From contig NW_021823664.1 in the NCBI RefSeq assembly GCF_006345805.1, positions 1 through 21,669 of the forward strand: a stretch of DNA of 21,669 bases, given 5' to 3'. Under the pieces are notes generated by a model, which made no database searches, was not told where the DNA came from, and worked only from the letters and a program-made list of their open reading frames with translations. Source of the DNA: Octopus sinensis (Eukaryota). Positions 2,428-21,341 of this stretch are shown one piece after another. Position 1 is the first letter of the stretch. The number at the start of each line of letters is the position of its first letter. A program made the translations under genes and the position numbers.

Positions 2428-2634
2428 TGTGGCACAAGGCCAGCAATTTCAAAGTAGGGATAAGTCTATTACAACGACCCCAGTGTTCAACAGGTACTTA
2501 ATTCTTTTATTGACCTCGAAATCATGACAGGTCAAGAAGACCTGGGCAGAATTTGAACTCAGAACGTAAAGACGAACGAAATGCCGCTAAGCATTTTTTT
2601 CCGGCGTGCAAACGATTCTGTCCGTACAGCGACC
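2428..2634 (-). mobile_element. tRNA-derived SINE family A, full length, diverged
   Basis: Contains gaatttgaactcagaacgtaaagacg..aaatgccgctaagcattt..ccggcgtgc..aacgattctg, the reverse complement of the A-family head and B box. Confidence 0.85.
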
Positions 2635-2655
2635 TTACAATATACTCTACTAAAA

Positions 2656-2867
2656 GGCGGCAAGCTGGTAGAAATGCCGGACGAAATGATTAGCAGTATT
2701 TCGCCTGTCTTTGCGTTCTGAGTTCAAATTCCATCGAGATCGTCTTTGCCTTTGATCCTTTCCGGGTCGATAAATTAAGTACCAGTCGGGTACTGGGGTC
2801 GATCTATTCGACTGCTTGCCTTCCCCAAAATTTCGGAAATTGTGCCTAAAGTAGAAGAGATTATTAT
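2656..2867 (+). mobile_element. tRNA-derived SINE family A
   Basis: Head ggcggcaagctggtagaa (A-box-like), B box gagttcaaattcc, body gtcgataaattaagtaccag..tactggggtcgatcta, tail gtagaagagattatt. Confidence 0.9.
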
Positions 2868-2877
2868 ATCAACCAAA

Positions 2878-3091
2878 GGTGGCGTGCTGGGTAGAAACGT
2901 TAGCACACCGGGCGAAATGCTTAGCGGTATTTCGTCAATATTTACGTCCTGAGTTCAAATTCCGCAGAGGTTGTCTTTGCCTTTCATCCTTTCCGGATCG
3001 ATAAATTAAGTACCAGTTGCGTACTGAGTCAATCCATTTGACTGGCCCCCTCCCCCAAAATTTCGGGCCTTGTGCCTAGAGTAGAAAAGAA
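2878..3091 (+). mobile_element. tRNA-derived SINE family A (second, tandem copy)
   Basis: Head ggtggcgtgctgggtagaaacgttagcac, B box gagttcaaattcc, tail ctggccccctcccccaaaatttcgggccttgtgcctagagtagaaaagaat. Confidence 0.9.
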
Positions 3092-3604: not shown

Positions 3605-3715
3605 AAAGGCAGGATGGCCATGCTTTGAAAGCCTTTGATCATGGGTTTATTTTATCAGAACCGACTCAAGACTAAACAACAACAACAGCAACAACGACCA
3701 CAACGGCAACAACAT
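3605..3715 (+). mobile_element. Fragment of an unclassified interspersed repeat (family F), SINE-like 3' tail ending in (AAC)n
   Basis: ggatggccatgc..gcctttgatcatggg resembles the reverse complement of 20505-20545 (tgatcagaggttattccagccatgactatcc); followed by aacaacaac. Confidence 0.45.
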
Positions 3716-4437: not shown

Positions 4438-4597
4438 GGCGCAGGAGTGGCTGTGTGGTAAGTAGCTTGCTTACAAATCGCATGGTTCCGGGTTCAGTCC
4501 CACAGCGTAGCACCTTGGGCAAGTGTCTTCTACTATAGCCTCGGGCCGACCAAAGCCTTGTGAGTGGATTTGGTAGACGGAAGCTGAAAGATGTCCA
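4438..4597 (+). mobile_element. SINE family B, 5' half (tRNA-like head plus core), followed by (TATG)n
   Basis: ggcgcaggagtggctgtgtggtaag (A box), ggttcagtccc (B box), ccttgggcaagtgtcttctactatagcctcgggccgaccaaagccttgtgagtggatttggtagacgg; (TATG)n at 4627-4688. Confidence 0.9.
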
Positions 4598-6124: not shown

Positions 6125-7860
6125 TACTTTGATACTTTGATAGGTTTCGGCCATTATTGGCCCAGGCCATGTCTAACTTAATAGCACCACCTGGTGAAGT
6201 CTTTCAAGTCAGAATTTGGGCACTATGGCCCACTCAAGTAGAGAGTTATTGTTTACAGAGACATATCCGGTGTAGGGGGTTTATCCGGATTTCTTGAAGG
6301 AATCTGTCCAAACACTTCTTGAACCCTATAGGGTCAGTTTTCTGTTTTAATTGTTTTGGTGTAATGTTAAAGAGAGCGGGGCCCAATTGAGGTGAAATAA
6401 TTGTGCCGTATTGTTGTTATGAGATGAGAGTGCGATTTTTGTTTTGGGCGGATGGCACGGGGCCCAAGCCTTGGATGTACCTTAAAGTGATGCCAACATC
6501 ATTGGGCAATGCTGATGGAATATTTTCCACATCATGCAGATGATGTAAGCGCTCACGACGACGTTGGAGAGAATAGAGTTTTAGCTTTCTAGTCGACCCC
6601 AATAGTCGAGGCCTGTCATGCCCTATCTTTTTTGTGATTGCCCTTTGAGGTGCTTCAACTTTTATGATACCTTGTATTGTGTGGGGAGACCCCAGTGGAC
6701 AACAGTATTCAAGGTGGGGTCGGGCAAAAGTGAGAAGAGAAGGATAATGGTGTGGATATCTCTCGACTGGAAAGTTCTGAGAATCCAGGAACACATTCTG
6801 CGGGCCATGTCAACTTTGGTGTTTATATGAGTGGCCCAGCTTACGTTGTTGTCCACATTACTCCCAAGTCTCTGATGTTGTTGACGCCGCGAGAGTTTCA
6901 CCTGAGGAAGGGAGTATGGGAGTTTTCAGGGCATCTCTCTTTTCCAAAGTGGATTAGCTCAATTTTATCCTCTTTCAGCAGCATATTGTTTTTTTCTGCC
7001 CATTGGATAACCGCCATAGATCTGACTGAAGGCATGTCCGGTCACTCGCCTCATTTATGACCTTCTGTAGCTTGGAGTCATCTGCAAAGATTTTTATGTT
7101 GCTGTGCTTGATGATGTCATTAATGTCATTATGTAAATGATGAAAAGAAGTGGGCCCAGCACAGTGCCTTGCGGAACGCCACTACTGACTTTGGCTGGGC
7201 TTGATTTTACCCCTTCAACTACAAATGTTGAGATCTGTCTGTCAGGAAACACTTAATCCATTCAGTAACTTTCCAGAGACACCAATGTTGGATAGTTTTT
7301 TCAATAGGATCTTGTGATCGACCCTGTCGAAGGCCTTACTGAAATCAAGGTAGATGACATCGGTGTTGGAGCCCTCTCCCAAAGCTCTCAAAATGTCCTC
7401 AAAGTGATGCAGGAGCTGCGTTAGGCAGTCCCTTCCATTACGGAACCCATGTTGGTTGGTGATCAGCCGCCGTCTTTGCTTCCAGAAATTGGGTTATTCG
7501 AGATCTCACCACCCTCTCAAATACCTTGATGATATGAGAGGTGAGTGAGATCGGACGGTAATTCACTGCAAGGGACTTGTTCCCTTTTTGAAAACTGGGA
7601 CAACAGACTGGGACAGAAGGTTTTTTGGAAATAGCCAGCATCCAGTGAGTTTCTCCACAGATTAGCAAGGGGAGATGCAACGTTGGTGTCGACACACCTT
7701 CAGGACACAAGCAGGGAACCTATCGGGCCTACTGCTGAATTGTTTTTTATTTCGTTATCGCCGCTAAGACATCAGGGCACTAAACGTTATGTCCGATATA
7801 GTGTGTTGGGGGTTGACATCACTGATACAGCCCAGATCGGCCATATCAGGATTGCTGAAA
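6125..7860 (-). mobile_element. CR1-clade non-LTR retrotransposon (LINE), 5'-truncated, ORF2 reverse transcriptase pseudogene
   Basis: Minus-strand translation across frameshifts gives NSAVGPD, NYRPISLTSHIIKVFERVV, NQHGFRNGRDCLTQLL, VIYLDFSKAFDRVDHK, GVPQGTVLGPLLF, FADDSK, RPHLEYCCPL, LKLYSLQRRRER. 3' end has a tandem 8-mer tail (TATCAAAG)2 at 6125-6142. Confidence 0.92.
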
Positions 7861-8577: not shown

Positions 8578-9368
8578 TCACCATCAGCACTCCTGGGCTC
8601 CCACCAGCATTATCAGTACTACTACCACCACCAACACCAACACCACCAGCAGCACCACCACCACTACCACCTCTACACCCATCACCACAACCACCATCAC
8701 CACCACCATCTCCACCATCAGACCCAGGCCTCCACCGGCACTACCACCTCCACCAACACCATTACCATCACCCCCCCCATCCCCACCACTATCATCCTCA
8801 GGCCCCCAACAGCACTACTAGCACCAACAACATCACCACCACCACCAACAGCAACAACTCTACCACCACCAGCATCCCCACTACTATCACCCTTAGGCCC
8901 CCCACCAGCACCAACAGCACCCCTAGTACAACCAGCACCACCAACAACACCTGCACAGCACCAGCACCAACACAAGCACCGCCATTATAACCATTATCAC
9001 CAGCACCAGCACCACCACCATCACCACAACCACCATCACCATCACCACTACCATCTCCACCATCAACCCAAGGCCTCCACCAAGACAAGCACCGCCATTA
9101 TAATCATTATCACCAGCACCACCACCATCACCATAACCACAACCACTATCATCTCCACCATCAGCCCCAGGCCTCCATCAGCACTACCACCACCACCACT
9201 ACAACCACCGTCACCATCACCATAACCATCACCACAACCATATCCACCATCAGCCCCAGGCCTCCACCAGCACTACCACCACCAGCACCAGCACCACCAC
9301 CACCACCACCAGCACCACTACCACCACCACCAACAACAACAACAACAACAATAACAACAGCAGCAACA
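8578..9368. repeat. (ACC/ATC/AGC/AAC)n low-complexity tract with cryptic higher-order repeats
   Basis: The anchor catctccaccatcag.cccaggcctccacc.gcactaccacc recurs near 8708, 9052, 9151 and 9243; caagcaccgccattataa.cattatcaccagcacc occurs twice. Confidence 0.9.
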
Positions 9369-10080
9369 AGAGTGCCGATGGAACATGATTATCTGATCCA
9401 TAATGTTAAAGTGATTATGGTGGGGGGTGGAGGACACTGATTAAGATTTTTATTGAAGACTAGGTGGAGCATGCTTAAACCTGCTTGTTAGATAATATGG
9501 TACCTTTAAAACCAACTAAAGTGATTAAAATTTGAATGTATCGCTAAAGTAATTAGTGAATTTCATGTGCATTTAAGAAAAAAGAAAAAAAAAATGTTTG
9601 ATGTTTAAAGCGTTATTTCGTGTACAGCTGTTCCTAGACGGATTTTCTCAACTAATTAGAGGTTAACGCTTATGAAATAAAACAAAACACGAACGGAAAA
9701 ATTACAAATAAAATAATAATTAAAATACGGAGAAAAACAAATCAGAGAAAATCCCCTTAATTACAACCAGCTGATGTTGAATAACGGCAATATCAGGAAC
9801 AACAATATTTGTAGCAGAAGTAGTAGTAGTAGTCGCGATCGTCATCAATGTCGTTGTCGTAGTAGTAGTAGTAGTAGTGATTCACTTTGTAGTAATTAAA
9901 ATATTGTTAATAAAAAAAGAAAAATGATTTTTAACTTTGACAGAAGGCCACAAAATCTGAAGGAAGGATGCTGTCGATTAAAAGACTCTTCTCTACGTAT
10001 TTTCGAAGACTCCTTGAAAAAAAAAAAAAACTACCAGAGTCGACTCAGAATGTAAAATGATGAAATTGAAAATAAACATA

Positions 10081-10291
10081 TCTACTATAGGCACAAAGCC
10101 TGAAATTTGCAAGGAGGGGGTTAATCGAAAGCATTGACCCCCCAGTGTTTCGCTGGTACTTAATTTATCGAGCCCGAAAGGGATAAACAGCAAAGTCGAC
10201 CTCGGCGGAATTTGAACTCAGAACGTGCAGACGTACGACATGCTGCTAAGCATTTTGTCCGGTGTGCTAACCATTCTGCCAGCTCGCCGCC
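10081..10291 (-). mobile_element. tRNA-derived SINE family A, full length
   Basis: Head aaccattctgccagctcgccgcc, B box ggaatttgaactc, body gtcgacctcggc, tail taggcacaaagcctgaaattt (all as reverse complement). Confidence 0.92.
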
Positions 10292-11378: not shown

Positions 11379-11781
11379 ATGTGTGTTGGTGTGTTATATG
11401 TTAGTCTGGAGAGATCGGTCTGGTAATGTTTGTGTATTGATAAGGCGGTTAGCTGGCAGAAACATGAGCCTGGCTAGGCTTTAAACGGGCGCATTTATTT
11501 ATATATTATTATGTTTGATGCAACAATTCGCCCAGACTTCGTTTCAATATTTTTTGCATTTTTTTTTACTGTTTCCGTTGATAAAATAATTTCTTCGGAC
11601 GGCGTTGGCAAAGCCGCCAACGCTAGATTTGCAAGTTGTGGAGTCTTCATTCTTTTTTTCAGTGGTGATTGTGGCTGAGGTGGAATTTGTCGATGTGTTA
11701 AAAGCGCAGTTTAATATTTTGCTTATCTGTTCTTCGTGTTAATTTTTGTGGTTGTTTTCGTTGTTACTTTTGTAGCTTTCC

Positions 11782-12560
11782 TCATGATGATGATGACGAC
11801 GACGGCAACGACGATGGTGGTGGTGGTGGTGGTGGTGATGATGATGATGATGACGACGACGACGATGACGAGATGAAGATGATGGTGACAATGACGACGA
11901 CGAAGTTGATAACAACGACGATATAAAGATGACGATGACGATGACAACTACGACGACAACGGTGATGGCAATGATGATGACGATGACAGTTGCGTTGACG
12001 ACGGTGATAACGATGATGATGATGTCCATAACGATGATGATGATGTGGATTGTGATGATGTGGATTGTGATGATGTGGATGATGATGATGACGATGATGA
12101 TGATGATGATGATAATGATGATGATGTTGATGATCGTGATAATGAGGATAAGACGCTGCTACATTTGCTGAAGTTCCTGATTATGCAGATTATCGCCTTT
12201 GGGTTGATGGTAGTGGTGGTGGTGATGATAATGATGATAACAACGATAATGATGATGAAGGTGATGATGACGATGATGATAATGATGATAATGATGATAA
12301 TGATGATAATGATATGTTGGCAGTGAATAATGTTCTTTGTTGTGATGATGGTGGTACTGATGGTGGTGATGTGGTGGTACTGATGACCAAGAAGGCTATG
12401 ATTACAATGATGAATTAAGCCGTAATGACGATGATAATAATGATATTAAGACTGCTGCTGCTGCTGTCGCTGGTGGTGGTGGTGGTGGTGATGATAATGC
12501 TAATAATGAGAATGAAAATGATGTCGATTATTTTGATTATTTTGGCGTGGTGTTGGTCGT
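11782..12560. repeat. (GAT/GGT/GAC)n degenerate trinucleotide tract
   Basis: Directly visible; includes a 15-mer GATGTGGATTGTGAT tandem near 12040-12085. Confidence 0.95.
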
Positions 12561-12622
12561 GGTGATGGAGAGGAACCACTCGAAACATCAGAATTGTGAG
12601 AATCGCAAACGCTCCAAATAAA

Positions 12623-12788
12623 AATGCTTTGCGACATTAATTCCAGTTCTTTAGTTTCAGAGTTCAAATTCCACCGAAGTCACCCTTGCCTTTCGTTCTT
12701 TTGGTGTCGAGAAAATGTATACCAGTCAAATACTGGGTACGATGTAATTAATTTCCCCGCCCCTCAAAAACAGCTGGCTATGTGTCAA

Positions 12789-12790
<2 letters not shown>
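12623..12790 (+). mobile_element. Degenerate SINE family A copy
   Basis: B box gagttcaaattccaccgaagtc..ttgcctttc, then gtcgagaaaatgtataccag..tactggg. Confidence 0.7.
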
Positions 12791-12821
<31 letters not shown>

Positions 12822-12880
12822 TTAATTTAATTATTATTATTTATTATTATTATTATTATATTATTATTATTATTATTATT
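12791..12880. repeat. (TTA)n microsatellite
   Basis: Directly visible. Confidence 0.95.
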
Positions 12881-13057
12881 AATATTGTTGTTGTTGGTGC
12901 TGGTTTCTTTTCAGGTGTAGGTTTTACTTTTGTATTGTTATTGTTCTTGTTGGTTTTATTTAATGGTGAAGATGCTAAGAATGATGGTGGTGAATGCTGG
13001 ACAGGTATCCATCTCGCTGAATACGATGCAAGGAAGTAAATAAAAGGATGTGCCTTA

Positions 13058-13116
13058 TGATGGTGGTGGTAGTCGTGGTGGCGGTAAAGATGACGGTGAC
13101 GCCAACGACGATGATT

Positions 13117-13150
<34 letters not shown>

Positions 13151-13400
13151 TGATGATGATGATGACGACGACGATTATAAAGATGATGACAATGATGATG
13201 ATGACGACGACGATTATAAAGATGATGATGACAATGATGATGAGAAAAATGACGATGATGATTACAATGATGATGATGTTGATGATCATAGCCGTGGTGA
13301 TAATGACGACGAAGATAAAGAAGAGAAAGAGATGAAAGAGGAGCACGACAAGAAAAGTGGTCGATAGTAATGATGATGGTGATGGTGATGGTGATGTATT
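13058..13400. repeat. (GAT/GAC)n tract with a ~39-bp internal tandem duplication
   Basis: gatgatgatgacgacgacgattataaagatgatgac occurs twice in tandem (~13150-13235). Confidence 0.9.
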
Positions 13401-14223: not shown

Positions 14224-14285
14224 TATTGCTGTATTAAATCTCTCAGCGAGATTTAAACAATAGCAATACGGAATCGTAACCTATA

Positions 14286-14755
14286 ATTGTCAACCAAGTG
14301 TGGCGTCCTATACGGGACAGTGCTACTGACGTTTATAGCCCCAGGAAGACATGTCTTCCAGCTGGCTAACGACACACACATTCTGTGTCGGATTAGTATT
14401 TGCGAAGGGAGGTCATTGCTCCCATCCTTAGCCTTACGTGATACATACGAACCCTCACTCACAGATTTAATATAGCTTATTTCTCCTTTTTGGAGATCAG
14501 CGACGGTTCGTCGCTGGAAAAAGCATATAGTATTTTGCGAGTGCGGGGAGTTTTCATCACGTTGAGGACGGTAATCACCCAGAAACTACAGTCCGTGTGT
14601 ATCACGTAAGGCTAGAGATTGGAGCGATGACCTCCCCTCGCAACAAATACTAATCGGACACAAAATGTGTGTCGTTAGCCAGCTAGAAGAGATGTCTTAC
14701 TGAAGCTATAAACGCCAGTAGCACTGTCCCGTACAGGATGCCACACTTTGTTGGC

Positions 14756-14758
<3 letters not shown>
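14286..14758. mobile_element. Fold-back / MITE-like element with long imperfect inverted arms, flanked by TATA
   Basis: Left attgtcaaccaagtgtggcgtcctatacgggacagtgctactgacgtttatagc... matches the reverse complement of the right end (attgccaacaaagtgtggcatcctgtacgggacagtgctactggcgtttatagc...) over ~170 bp and continues inward after a 42-nt bulge. TATA at 14282-14285 and 14759-14762. Confidence 0.8.
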
Positions 14759-14792
<34 letters not shown>

Positions 14793-16425: not shown

Positions 16426-16772
16426 CCCTTTAGCATTTTAACTGGTCAAACCAGTCTTAAATATTCTACCTGTCTAATGTTCAAACCGACCTGATCCAAC
16501 CTGTCACACCTACCCTACAATGTAATTCTAAAAATAAACAATTACGTTATCGTAACATCGAAGCAACGAGATAATGCAAAATAGAGAAGTATTTCATTTG
16601 ACAGAATAATCTCAAAGCTATTCCGCTGAGGTCGACTTTGCCTTTTATCCTTTCGGGATCGATAAATAAAGTACCAGTTGCGTACTAGGGTCGATCTATT
16701 CGACTGGCCCCCTCCCTCAAAATTTCGGGCCTTGTGTCTAGAGTAGAAAAGAATAATCTGAATGCTAGAGAG
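16426..16772. mobile_element. piggyBac-like non-autonomous MITE interrupted by a SINE
   Basis: 12-bp TIRs ccctttagcatt / aatgctagagag (10/12). Flanks gtta and ttag resemble a decayed TTAA TSD. Confidence 0.55.
16621..16757 (+). mobile_element. 5'-truncated SINE family A nested in the MITE
   Basis: Very close match to 2962-3091. Direct repeat agaataatct at 16603-16612 and 16750-16759 is a candidate TSD. Confidence 0.88.
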
Positions 16773-17198: not shown

Positions 17199-17258
17199 CC
17201 TTTACCCTTTTACTTGTTTCAGTCATTTGACTGTGGCCATGCTGGAGCCTTTAGTCGG
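17199..17258 (-). mobile_element. 3' tail fragment of SINE family B
   Basis: ttttacttgtttcagtcatttgactgtggccatgctggagc matches 715-750. Confidence 0.8.
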
Positions 17259-17438
17259 TTAAACTTCTATAATACACAAAATAAATAATTTTTTAAAATA
17301 TGATTATTGTAATAATTCCTGGTAATATATAATTCCTAGTAATAATAAGACCTAGCAATATTAATTATGAAAACGTAATAGGCTTTTATTAACACTGAAT
17401 GGTTATGAGGGTCCAACGGAGCAAAGTAGGAATCAACA

Positions 17439-17611
17439 GGGTAGGAGTAGGAGTAGCTTGCTTACCAACCACATGGTTCCATGTTCATTCCCATTGCGTG
17501 GCACCCTGGACAAGTGTCTTCTACTATAGCCTCGGGCCGACCAAAGCCTTGTGAGTGGATTTGGTAGACGGATATTGAAAGAAACCCGTCGTATATATAT
17601 ATATATATATA
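17439..17611 (+). mobile_element. SINE family B, 5' half, ending in (TA)10 where the palindromic element begins
   Basis: Near-identical core to 4438-4597; ends gaaagaaacccgtcg(ta)10. Confidence 0.92.
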
Positions 17612-17715
17612 CCGGAGTAAACACATAAATGTGAAACAAGGTGGAAAAAAGAGTACTCAAATACCAGTGGTAGAGTAATATGCTTTATTTTAAGCAGCAG
17701 AAAATTCAACAAAAT

Positions 17716-17753
17716 CTGTTACTCTGAGTTTCTCGTTGCCGTTCATCAGACAG
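17716..17753 (-). ncRNA. Minimal type I hammerhead ribozyme motif
   Basis: Minus strand reads ctgt CTGATGA acg-gcaa-cga GAAA ctc-a-gag TA acag. Intact core, stem I ctgt/acag, stem III ACTC/GAGT with a 1-nt loop, GUA cleavage triplet. Stem II has an A-A mismatch at its base and a GCAA (GNRA) loop. Confidence 0.75.
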
Positions 17754-19424
17754 TTTTTGCTAGAATGGAACATATATATTAATTCAATCTATACTCTTAC
17801 AAACGCTACACCTTTAAAAAGAAATGGACTTGTTTGATTGGCCCTTTAGAAAAAACGGTCAATCTTCGAGCGATAAACAAAAGGTCAAAAATATATGTAT
17901 ATTATATATAAAAAAACTTATAAAAATTATAAAATCCGAGGAAAAAACCGAGGAAAAACCTATTGCCGTTAATGAAGACAGTACAAATTAATGCATAGAA
18001 ATTAAACCTGTTATAAATACTGCAATACATATTTATATTAAAATCCACATATATATCTCAACATACACAAAAGGATGCGCGTAAACGCCATACATACATT
18101 ACAGACGTATGAATATGATCTAAATTATACACATAAAAGCATGTGTACATATATTCACGCAAACCGTCTCGCACGCAAGCTAAAATTCATCTATGTAGCA
18201 ATTCTCATATACTGAGCAAGGAGGGGGAACGAAGAAAGGGAAGAGAGTAAAAAGGAACGAAGGAGGGGTGGGGAAACTTGTAGCGATATTATTGGCATCT
18301 ATAGAGGCCAGTATACATACACAAGTTTGAATTGATCATATACATACCCGTGTGTGTATGCGTGCTTAAGCACACATACTTTCACTTACACATACACAGA
18401 TACGCATGCTTACAAATACATATGCTTTGCTATACACAAACTTATATAACATTCTAAATTTGACAACATTGCTTTTTTTAAAAAACATTGCTTTTAAAAA
18501 ATGGGTGCATTAATAAAAATATATACGAAAGACATATAAAATAAAATATAACATCCTATTTTGGGTCATTTATAAATAATCAAGGTAATGATTATTTATA
18601 AATGACCCAAAATAGGATGTTATATTTTATTTTATATGTCTTTCGTATATATTTTTATTAATGCACCCATCTTTTAAAAGCAATTTTTGTTTTTTTTTAA
18701 AAAGTAATGTTGTCAAATTTAGAATGTTTATATAGTTGTGTATAGCAAAGCATATGTATTTGTAAGCATGCGTATCTGTGTATGTGTAAGTGAAAGTATG
18801 CTTGTGCTTAAGCACGCATACACACGACGGTATGTATATGTATCAATTCAAACTTGTGTATGTATACTGGCCTCTATAGATGCCAATAATATCGCTACAA
18901 GTTTTTCCCCACCCCTCCTTCGTTCCTTTTTCTCTCTTTCCCTTTCTTTCGTTCCCCCTCCTTGCTCAGTATATGAGAATTGCTACATAGATGAATTTTA
19001 GCTTGCGTGCGAGACGGTTTGCGTGAATATATGTACACATGCTTTTATGTGTATAATTTAGATTCATTTCATACTTCTGTATATGTATGTATGGCGTTTA
19101 CGCGCATCCTTTTGTGTATGTTGATATATATATGTGGATTTTAATATAATATGTATTGCAGTATTTATAACAGGTTTAATTTCTATGCATTAATTTGTAC
19201 TGTCTTCATTAACGGCAATAGGTTTTTTCCTCGGTTTTTCCTCGGATTTTATAATTTTTATAAGTTTTTTTATATATATATACATATATTTTTGACCTTT
19301 TTTTTATCGCTCGAAGATTGACCGTTTTTTCTAAAGGGCCAATCAAACAAGTCCATTTCTTTTTAAAGGTGTAGCGTTTGTAGAGTATAGATTGAATTAA
19401 TTATATGTTCCATTCTAGCAAAAA

Positions 19425-19462
19425 CTGTCTGATGAACGGCAACGAGAAACTCAGAGTAACAT
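19425..19462 (+). ncRNA. Minimal type I hammerhead ribozyme motif (second-arm copy)
   Basis: ctgt CTGATGA acg-gcaa-cga GAAA ctc-a-gag TA acat; identical to the left copy except the last stem I base. Confidence 0.7.
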
Positions 19463-19492
19463 ATTTTGTTGAATTTTCTGCTGCTTAAAAAG

Positions 19493-19514
19493 TATATATA
19501 TATTATATATATAT

Positions 19515-19545
<31 letters not shown>

Positions 19546-19792
19546 ATATATATATATATGTGTGTGTGTGTGAGTGTGTGCATGTTTGTGTGTCTGTGTT
19601 TGTCCCCCCCCCCATCATCGTTTGACAACGGATGCTGGTGTGTTTACGTCCCCGTAACTTAGCGGTTTGGCAAAAGAGATCGATAGATTAAGTACTAGGC
19701 TTACAAAGAATAAGTTCTGCGGTCGATTTGCTCGACTTAGGGCGGTGCTCCAGCATAGCCGCAGTCAAATGACTGAAATAAATAAAAGAGTA
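19493..19792 (+). mobile_element. SINE family B, resumed (TA)n/(TG)n tract and 3' half
   Basis: gtgtctgtgtttgtccccc..tttgacaacggatgctggtgtgtttacgtccccgtaacttagcgg..gcggtgctccagcatagccgcagtcaaatgactgaaa is colinear with the reverse complement of 700-905. Confidence 0.92.
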
Positions 19793-20171
19793 CGCATATA
19801 CATAATTATAGCTACTACTTATTAAACAGAATTTTCTTTTTTTTTCGTAATTCAGTAATTTTTAAAGAACTGACAGGCTTTATTGCGTATAAGATGATCG
19901 ACACACCATCAGCTGGTGTTGAAGGTAGATAAATTTTAACAGCAAGCATAGCTTTCACATTTGAGAAGGCTATCATAACTACGAGGCATCTTGCAGTAGC
20001 ATGGGAAAAAAACCTATAAATAGATCACATGGACGATATCTGTGTTAGAAATGATATCAGGTGTTGTTAAAAACCAGCGGGTATCGTGTATACCTACATT
20101 TTTATAATTCAAGAGTTAAATATTTTAGTATCAAATTGATTATTTATTATGTCCCAAAATATATGCTTTAT

Positions 20172-20943: not shown

Positions 20944-21099
20944 ATAATCTTTTCTACTCTAGGCACAAGGCCCGAAATGTTGGGGAAGGGGCTAGTCGAT
21001 TAGATGGATCCCAGTACACAACTTGTACTTATTTCATCGACACCGAAAGGATGAAAGGCAAAGTCGACCTCGGTGGAAATTGAACTCAGAACGTTAAGA
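20944..21099 (-). mobile_element. SINE family A lacking its head
   Basis: tctactctaggcacaaggcccgaaat..gaaaggatgaaaggcaaagtcgacctcggtggaaattgaactcagaacgt. Confidence 0.9.
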
Positions 21100-21103
21100 C
21101 ACA

Positions 21104-21341
21104 AAATACCTATTTTATTACTACCCACAAGGGGCTAGACACAGAGGGGACAAACAAGGACAGACAAACGGATTAAGTCGATTATATCGACTCCAGTGCG
21201 TAACTGCTACTTATTTAATCGACACTGAAAGGATGAAAGGCAAAGTCGACCTCGGTGGAATTTGAACTCAGAACGTAGCGGCAGACGAAATACCGCTTAG
21301 CATTTCGCCCGGCGTGCTAACGTTTCTGCCAGCTCGCCGCC
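21104..21341 (-). mobile_element. SINE family A, full length, alternative-tail subfamily
   Basis: Well-preserved head and B box; the 3' tail reads ttaatccgtttgtctgtccttgtttgtcccctctgtgtctagccccttgtgggtagtaata instead of the usual tail. Confidence 0.92.

Follow-up and report, generated by a model that had tools for sequence, protein, structure and literature searches.

Insertions of Penelope-like elements (PLEs) show a recognisable shape: they are strongly truncated at the 5′ end, they often adjoin an inverted copy that is likewise 5′-truncated, and they carry a tail of 30-40 bp at one end only (PMC8557442). Their head-to-head inverted repeats, which have palindromes at the junction, have been ascribed to self-priming; a 31-bp tail has been found at the 3′ end of one inverted pseudo-long terminal repeat (pLTR), and both microhomology at 5′ junctions and the mobilisation in trans of unrelated sequence have been reported (PMC3846280). 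One clade, the Naiads, favours (TA)n as its target, which masks target-site duplications, and is present in Octopus spp.; PLE transposition has so far had no reconstitution in vitro (PMC8557442). In Octopus vulgaris, PLE families with recent activity number 31 and their insertions 336 (PMC13282606), and the minimal hammerhead ribozymes of PLEs were described by Cervera and de la Pena as having an extra nucleotide after position 9, a G10.1-C11.1 pair, a helix II of 6-8 bp and a palindromic helix III (PMC4209133). Here we describe an insertion of 1,879 bp from Octopus sinensis, found on contig NW_021823664.1 of the RefSeq assembly GCF_006345805.1, of which positions 1 to 21,669 of the forward strand were analysed (the window, 21,669 nucleotides (nt) in all). 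The insert lies inside the internal (TA)n tract of one short interspersed element (SINE), and is made of two long inverted arms with an additional tail at the left end only. Our preferred reading, to which we give a probability of roughly 0.4, is that it is the fossil of one event of target-primed reverse transcription, in which the complementary DNA (cDNA) snapped back on itself. It is probably not a mobile palindromic element, and probably has no present function.

A split SINE and a palindrome with a tail

The order of the parts in an uninterrupted SINE is given by an intact copy on the minus strand of the window, at about 690-1095, which runs from the 5′ half through a TA/TG-rich tract to the 3′ half. 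When the flanks of the insert are aligned to this copy, the 5′ half as far as the TA tract is matched by the left flank (17440-17611), and the tract with the 3′ half by the right one (19491-19800); both flanks are colinear with the intact SINE, of whose unique sequence nothing is missing or present twice. The 5′ half differs by substitutions only, both from the intact copy (reverse complement of about 690-1095) and from a further copy at about 4438. The two halves are thus one SINE, interrupted in its internal microsatellite, with non-SINE sequence from 17612 to about 19490-19492 between them. The alignment agrees with an earlier note on this DNA, made from its letters alone, which had the 5′ half ending in (TA)10 at 17611 and the 3′ half resuming after 19490 in the same orientation; it also bears out the claims that the halves come from one copy and not from different ones, and that the (TA)n tract received a single block. 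Within the TA tract, a target-site duplication cannot be made out. The SINE copy at 4442 to about 5040 has a long (TGTA)n run and at least about 130 nt of non-SINE sequence in the corresponding internal microsatellite, and its 3′ half is barely recognisable; this microsatellite seems to be a soft spot, at which insertion or expansion recurs.

Table 1. Features of the insert, of the SINE that holds it and of a second SINE family, in window positions.
Feature	Positions	Strand	Basis and remarks
SINE 5′ half (tRNA-related head, then body as far as the internal microsatellite)	17440..17591	+	Alignment to the intact copy and to the copy at about 4438
(TA)10, left part of the SINE internal microsatellite	17592..17611	.	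Direct reading; a TA/TG tract occupies this place in the intact SINE
Unpaired one-sided tail, 64-76 nt	17612..17687	-	Interpreted as the 3′ extremity of the RNA that was inserted; putative sense strand is -
Left arm, 895 nt	17688..18582	-	Inverted-repeat blocks I1-I8 and gapped alignment; + strand reads as antisense (cDNA-like)
Hammerhead-like motif, left copy	17707..17762	-	CUGAUGA 17749-17743; helix I 11/12 pairs
Loop AGGTAA, 6 nt, centre of symmetry	18583..18588	.	Inverted-repeat search
Right arm, 902 nt	18589..19490	+	Inverted-repeat search and gapped alignment; putative sense strand is +
Hammerhead-like motif, right copy	19416..19471	+	CUGAUGA 19429-19435; GAAA 19446-19449; helix I 10/12 pairs
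Right junction: AG, then TATAT microhomology, then the remaining SINE TA/TG microsatellite	19491..19584	.	
SINE 3′ half, continuing the 17440..17591 half	19585..19792	+	Alignment to the 3′ half of the intact copy
Second SINE family, copies and fragments	2499-3037, 10158-10280, 12648-12746, 16600-16716, 20983-21330	both	

Inside the insert, a gapped alignment of one arm against the reverse complement of the other gives 877 identical columns out of 912, far above chance, and so upholds the near-perfect inverted arms and the 6-nt loop that had been described before. The arms are AT-rich, the left one being A-rich on the + strand, and each contains a 10-nt palindrome, ATTTATAAAT, at 7 nt from the central junction. 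The earlier description of the insert as fully palindromic does not hold, since the leftmost part, which that description lacked, has no partner: what was inserted is a palindrome with a tail on one side. Counted strictly, 76 nt are without a counterpart in the right arm; if a 3-nt gap is allowed, the unpaired part shrinks to about 64 nt, the right arm runs on as AG(T/C)ATAT into the tract, and the right junction becomes an ATAT microhomology with the target. At the inner edge of the tail, where the match of the right arm to the left arm stops, an AATAAA stands on the putative sense (-) strand at 17689-17684.

The outer ends of the arms bear on one alternative, that of a non-autonomous hairpin DNA transposon of the fold-back or MITE-like kind (miniature inverted-repeat transposable element), either of piggyBac type with TTAA or of Tc1/mariner type with a TA duplication. 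The insertion does lie in a TA tract, and a TTAA is found 2 nt inside both outer arm ends, at 17690-17693 and 19485-19488; TTAA is itself palindromic, however, so that its occurrence in both arms adds nothing beyond the palindrome. The termini (GCAGCAG...) are unlike the CCC/GGG-type ends of piggyBac. The inverted repeat also stops short of the left boundary, so that this alternative needs a prior, independent insertion for the 64-76-nt tail, and the arms have no tandem subrepeats, unlike Foldback elements; self-BLAST found no subrepeats within the arm. Even though both piggyBac and Tc1-mariner elements have been recently active in O. vulgaris (PMC13282606), we consider a transposon of this kind very improbable.

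A putative single-event origin

In the account that we prefer, a nick or break would have opened in the (TA)n tract of the SINE, most likely through the endonuclease of a PLE, and the 3′-OH of (TA)10 on the + strand would have primed reverse transcription of a non-coding RNA, beginning at the 3′ end of that RNA. The product of this priming would be the tail and the left arm (17612-18582), laid down as antisense cDNA. After about 970 nt, the nascent strand would have folded at the 6-nt loop and gone on to copy itself, which would have made the right arm (18589-19490). Self-copying would have ended 64-76 nt short of the start of the cDNA, and the free end would have been joined across the break at the ATAT/(TA)n microhomology, so that the + strand from 17592 to 19500 would be one continuous product of 5′ to 3′ synthesis. 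Synthesis from the right junction was also considered and set aside: a snap-back copy of the right arm would in that case run on into the target DNA, and the tail would go unexplained.

What can be seen of this account in the DNA is its geometry, the tail on one side, the microhomology, the target in (TA)n and the absence of coding capacity. We infer that the enzyme was a PLE-type reverse transcriptase (RT), that its template was an RNA, and that the hammerhead-like motif described below marks the sense strand. Four published hallmarks of PLE insertions come together in the insert: it lies in a (TA)n target, its arms stand head to head, a 3′ tail is present on one side only, and one junction has microhomology. 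The inverted copies stand head to head with a palindrome at their junction, and their sense strands point outward if the motif does mark sense; the outward direction in both arms would put the 3′ ends on the outside and the tail at a 3′ end, as the PLE model requires. The layout therefore agrees with the PLE literature (PMC8557442, PMC3846280), as the earlier note had proposed. Because the tail is present on one side only and the opposite junction is one of microhomology, the palindrome appears to have been made in one insertion event, which argues against a palindromic unit that moves as such.

The motif in question was found with a simple descriptor scan of the window, which returned exactly two sites, one in each arm, both reading outward. 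Both copies have the CUGANGA and GAAA boxes in order, together with a UH cleavage site, as a hammerhead should. In the right copy the cleavage triplet is GUA at 19456-19458 and cleavage is predicted after 19458; in the left copy the predicted cleavage site lies between 17720 and 17719. Helix III consists of the 3 bp of ACU/AGU closed by the loop CAG, and its stretch ACUCAGAGU is self-complementary, so that a helix I and a palindromic helix III are both present. In 400 dinucleotide-preserving shuffles of the window, no equally good site arose, the mean being 1.3 bare cores. Among the features that recur in the minimal hammerheads of PLEs, the extra nucleotide after position 9 and the palindromic helix III are there, while G10.1-C11.1 and the 6-8-bp helix II are absent.

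As for what else the arms contain, no open reading frame (ORF) longer than 87 amino acids (aa) is found in six frames, none in the left arm exceeds 55 aa, and the six-frame translations have no Pfam domain at E<=1; the insert is non-coding, as had been claimed. If a PLE-type enzyme was at work, its template would thus be a non-autonomous RNA or one mobilised in trans. A protein-database search with the 87-aa arm ORF gave no match, nor did one with a 75-aa ORF that crosses the junction between SINE and tail; as neither the arm ORF nor the SINE-derived one was matched, the small ORFs of this genome appear to be absent from the protein database. An exact 22-mer of the hammerhead-like motif had no match in IMG/VR. 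Its sole match in the JGI metagenomes (L001 1225-1246) falls within coding sequence on a bacterial contig rich in GC and was dismissed as chance. At 18526-18645 there are sub-threshold Rfam matches to microRNA precursors of plants and animals (MIR1319, MIR774 and mir-3912, at 45-49 bits against gathering scores of 80-117), and these were rejected as a sign of a precursor since they merely reflect the perfect central hairpin.

A number of observations weigh against this snap-back account. The first group concerns the ribozyme. Helix II has only 2 bp (C-G and G-C), in the segment ACGGCAACGA, which reads CG/GCAA/CG and is flanked by A and A; this is short of the >=4 bp looked for, and further still from the 6-8 bp and G10.1-C11.1 closing pair of PLE minimal hammerheads. 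The Rfam hammerhead models have no match in the whole window at the gathering score, and none at E<=10 on 17400-19800 (2.4 kb) or on 17690-17780 (91 nt). These models may not cover the minimal hammerhead variants of PLEs. The second group concerns the enzyme and its template: neither an RT nor a GIY-YIG endonuclease, which an ORF of a PLE would encode, was found in six frames of the arms, and none of PLE type was seen among the window ORFs of >=90 aa. The arm, moreover, is single copy within the window: no second copy of arm or tail occurs elsewhere in it, BLAST giving only low-complexity TA/CA matches. The tail is about twice the published length (64-76 nt against 30-40 bp), and the putative sense strand is T-rich. 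The Naiads, which are the clade that targets (TA)n, have been reported without canonical hammerheads (PMC8557442). The noisy, strand-biased consensus of the arms, which is treated in the next section, suggests weak read support, and fold-back synthesis by a DNA polymerase would give equal geometry. The missing RT/GIY-YIG ORF is compatible with a non-autonomous derivative, which would not need one.

The only RT-like sequence among the window ORFs of that size is a weak LINE-type (long interspersed element) remnant at 6417-7710, unrelated to the palindrome. It is decayed, lies on the - strand, contains the motif NYRPISLTSHIIKVFERV, and matches Pfam RVT_1 over 7438-7710 at E=0.006, below the curated cut-off.

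How the motif itself is to be called depends on its folding as well. The hammerhead fold has -7.5 and -4.0 kcal/mol in the two copies, against -12.2 and -8.7 kcal/mol for the hairpin of minimum free energy (MFE); this competing hairpin, which pairs CUGA with UCAG, is 4.7 kcal/mol more stable than the hammerhead fold, and the motif region is no more stable than its shuffles (z=0.66). We therefore speak of a hammerhead-like, putative motif, which may be a ribozyme that has decayed or diverged, or else a 3′ stem-loop with the boxes in it by chance. The earlier note had placed a hammerhead near each outer end, reading outward: the boxes, helices I and III and the orientation stand, and the name hammerhead does not, given the 2-bp helix II and the lack of an Rfam match.

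The equal geometry expected from a DNA polymerase leads to a purely DNA-level origin by repair, which we judge unlikely. A break in (TA)n would here be followed by microhomology-mediated synthesis that copies about 970 nt of ectopic DNA or of a captured cDNA, then by fold-back, and at the end by re-annealing of the TA; the arm would not be a transposable element (TE), and the motif would be incidental or carried along with the donor. Long TA tracts form cruciforms and break, and the geometry, the one-sided tail and the ATAT microhomology all fit such a repair. In favour of repair, too, the arm is without coding capacity, bears no recognisable hallmark of a TE and is not repeated in the window, and the hammerhead is a putative one. 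What tells against repair is that kb-scale templated palindromic insertions are rare in comparison with PLE insertions, of which O. vulgaris has hundreds of recent copies (PMC13282606), that the specific signature of PLEs is just this union of a target in (TA)n with arms set head to head and a 3′ tail on one side, and that the orientation of the motif agrees with the retroelement model.

A more daring form of the snap-back account would make the insert a clean and very young fossil of self-primed second-strand synthesis in retrotransposition by an octopus PLE, the template being an undescribed non-coding, non-autonomous element with a divergent hammerhead of 2-bp helix II in its 3′ region. We hold this form to be doubtful. 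Should it be true, the whole path, from the 3′-OH of the target through the cDNA and the hairpin turn to the capture by microhomology, would be kept on one strand, and this would be direct structural evidence on the mechanism of PLE integration and on the origin of the tail.

Arm differences and the state of the assembly

The arms differ from each other in a way that is not that of aging repeats. Their gapped alignment has 8 substitutions and 22 indel events, while seven pairs of SINEs from this window have 149 substitutions and 6 indel events (Fisher p=9e-17), and indel noise of 1 nt is absent from the SINE alignments, being confined to the palindrome. The noise is biased by strand: in 17/19 A/T indels, it is the shorter arm that has A on the + strand (p=7e-4), and 4/8 of the arm substitutions have C in the left arm and A in the reverse complement of the right arm. 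A single error mode, the under-calling of A on the + strand, accounts for both arms. On the simplest reading, the differences are local errors of a consensus built on few reads or on a single strand, and not evolutionary divergence, and the sequenced molecule itself probably had identical arms. The accuracy of nanopore reads falls inside inverted duplicates (PMC7229812), so that a genuine palindrome would look noisy too. Dating the insertion by the divergence of its arms was rejected, since the differences look technical. The same holds as a warning for this assembly, whose consensus is unreliable in inverted repeats and in which the apparent divergence of arms should not be used for dating.

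This pattern is also what one would see if the structure, in whole or in part, were an artefact of sequencing or assembly, an explanation that we take to be somewhat unlikely. The palindrome, or its 6-nt centre, would then come from one or a few aberrant long reads, possibly through a fold-back molecule, through a gap filled from a single read, or through the collapse of a spacer that in fact separates two genuine inverted repeats. The excess of indels over substitutions, limited as it is to the palindrome, and the strand-biased loss of A, which a consensus drawn from one strand or from very few reads would be expected to show, are a signature of thin read support, and it is mainly for this signature that we do not rate the artefact lower. 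The flanks, however, are colinear SINE halves and not mirror images, and the tail is not mirrored at the right, so that a simple fold-back read would not explain the insert. Each outer junction independently sets an arm end against the TA tract of one and the same SINE, and no 14-mers of SMRTbell, Oxford Nanopore Technologies (ONT) or Illumina adapters occur at the centre or at the junctions. For the insert to be an artefact, three chimeric joins would have to coincide, or a spacer would have to have been lost between inverted repeats that are themselves real. The local noise, moreover, is to be expected in a genuine palindrome (PMC7229812), and short-read polishing would presumably skip reads that map to several places. 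The statement in the earlier note that the insert is not a fold-back chimera of reads agrees with the unmirrored flanks and tail and with the adapter-free centre; the noise nevertheless still fits thin read support. In the window as a whole, matches to a SMRTbell 14-mer occur at 3672 and 9330, far from the insert, in low complexity of (CAA)n type.

Elsewhere, the window is rich in repeats of other kinds. Large, degenerate blocks of trinucleotide repeats (GAT/GGT/GAC and complements) occur in both orientations at 1-700, 8590-9400 and 11740-13400, and give rise to long ORFs that are spurious, with many D, G, H, M and I residues. Two further pairs of short inverted repeats, 17203-17248 with 19747-19792 and 14282-14386 with 14658-14762, do not belong to the palindrome and result from the 3′ ends of separate SINEs that face opposite ways. 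One truncated SINE tail, in reverse orientation, is located some 200 bp upstream of the split SINE. A second SINE family, recognised by the motif GAATTTGAACTCAGAACGT, has at least 6 copies or fragments (Table 1). ARAGORN called no tRNA in the whole window, the SINE head included.

Comparison with known systems

Helitrons were rejected by direct reading, as the insert does not have TC...CTRR ends. The non-LTR (long terminal repeat) retrozymes of metazoans were rejected as well: these are tandem repeats of 170-400 nt with a type I hammerhead in each, whereas the two copies of the motif here are inverted and 1.7 kb apart, with no direct or tandem copies. Foldback (FB) elements and MITEs with long terminal inverted repeats (TIRs) resemble the insert in being nearly all inverted repeat, with a tiny loop and no coding sequence; they differ from it in that its ends are asymmetric through the tail, that it has no arrays of subrepeats and that no target-site duplication can be demonstrated. 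Twin priming and other self-primed cDNA synthesis of non-LTR elements, and the capture of cDNA at breaks, share with the insert an inverted segment made in a single event, the 5′ truncation and the microhomology. Twin priming of L1, however, inverts a different part of the RNA, whereas both arms here are the same stretch of about 900 nt, as would be expected from true fold-back copying.

The motif has its closest parallels in the type I and minimal hammerheads of metazoan PLEs and retrozymes, with which it shares the order of the boxes, the extra nucleotide after position 9, the GUA triplet, a short palindromic helix III able to dimerise, and a helix I with an internal mismatch. It departs from them in its 2-bp helix II, in an extra A before G12, in having no Rfam match, and in a fold that is not the MFE fold. 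The earlier note had gone from the motif and the palindrome to a fold-back ribozyme retroelement, and had thought a palindromic form on the kb scale unusual. We follow neither step: the ribozyme fails on Rfam and on helix II, the tail and the microhomology argue against a palindromic mobile unit, and head-to-head, 5′-truncated copies with a palindromic junction are a described hallmark of PLEs.

It is to the endonuclease-positive PLEs (Penelope/Poseidon, Neptune and Naiad) that the insert as a whole comes nearest. The differences are that it has no RT/GIY-YIG ORF and no direct pLTR, consisting of just two inverted, non-coding 3′ pieces, that its tail of 64-76 nt exceeds their 30-40, and that its motif is without a long helix II and G10.1-C11.1. 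The likenesses are the short palindromic head-to-head junction, the 3′ tail at one end and the (TA)n target (PMC8557442, PMC3846280), and with them the single microhomology junction and a hammerhead-like motif in the 3′-terminal non-coding part (PMC8557442, PMC3846280, PMC4209133). If the structure is real, its perfect hairpin of 900 bp is a potential source of double-stranded RNA or small RNAs, should it be transcribed, and a fragile site; it would also be a tidy example of how PLEs make inverted structures in a single event. The insert is best seen as one more case of the known head-to-head, self-primed insertion in the style of PLEs, in this instance a non-coding one, and not as a new kind of fold-back ribozyme retroelement.

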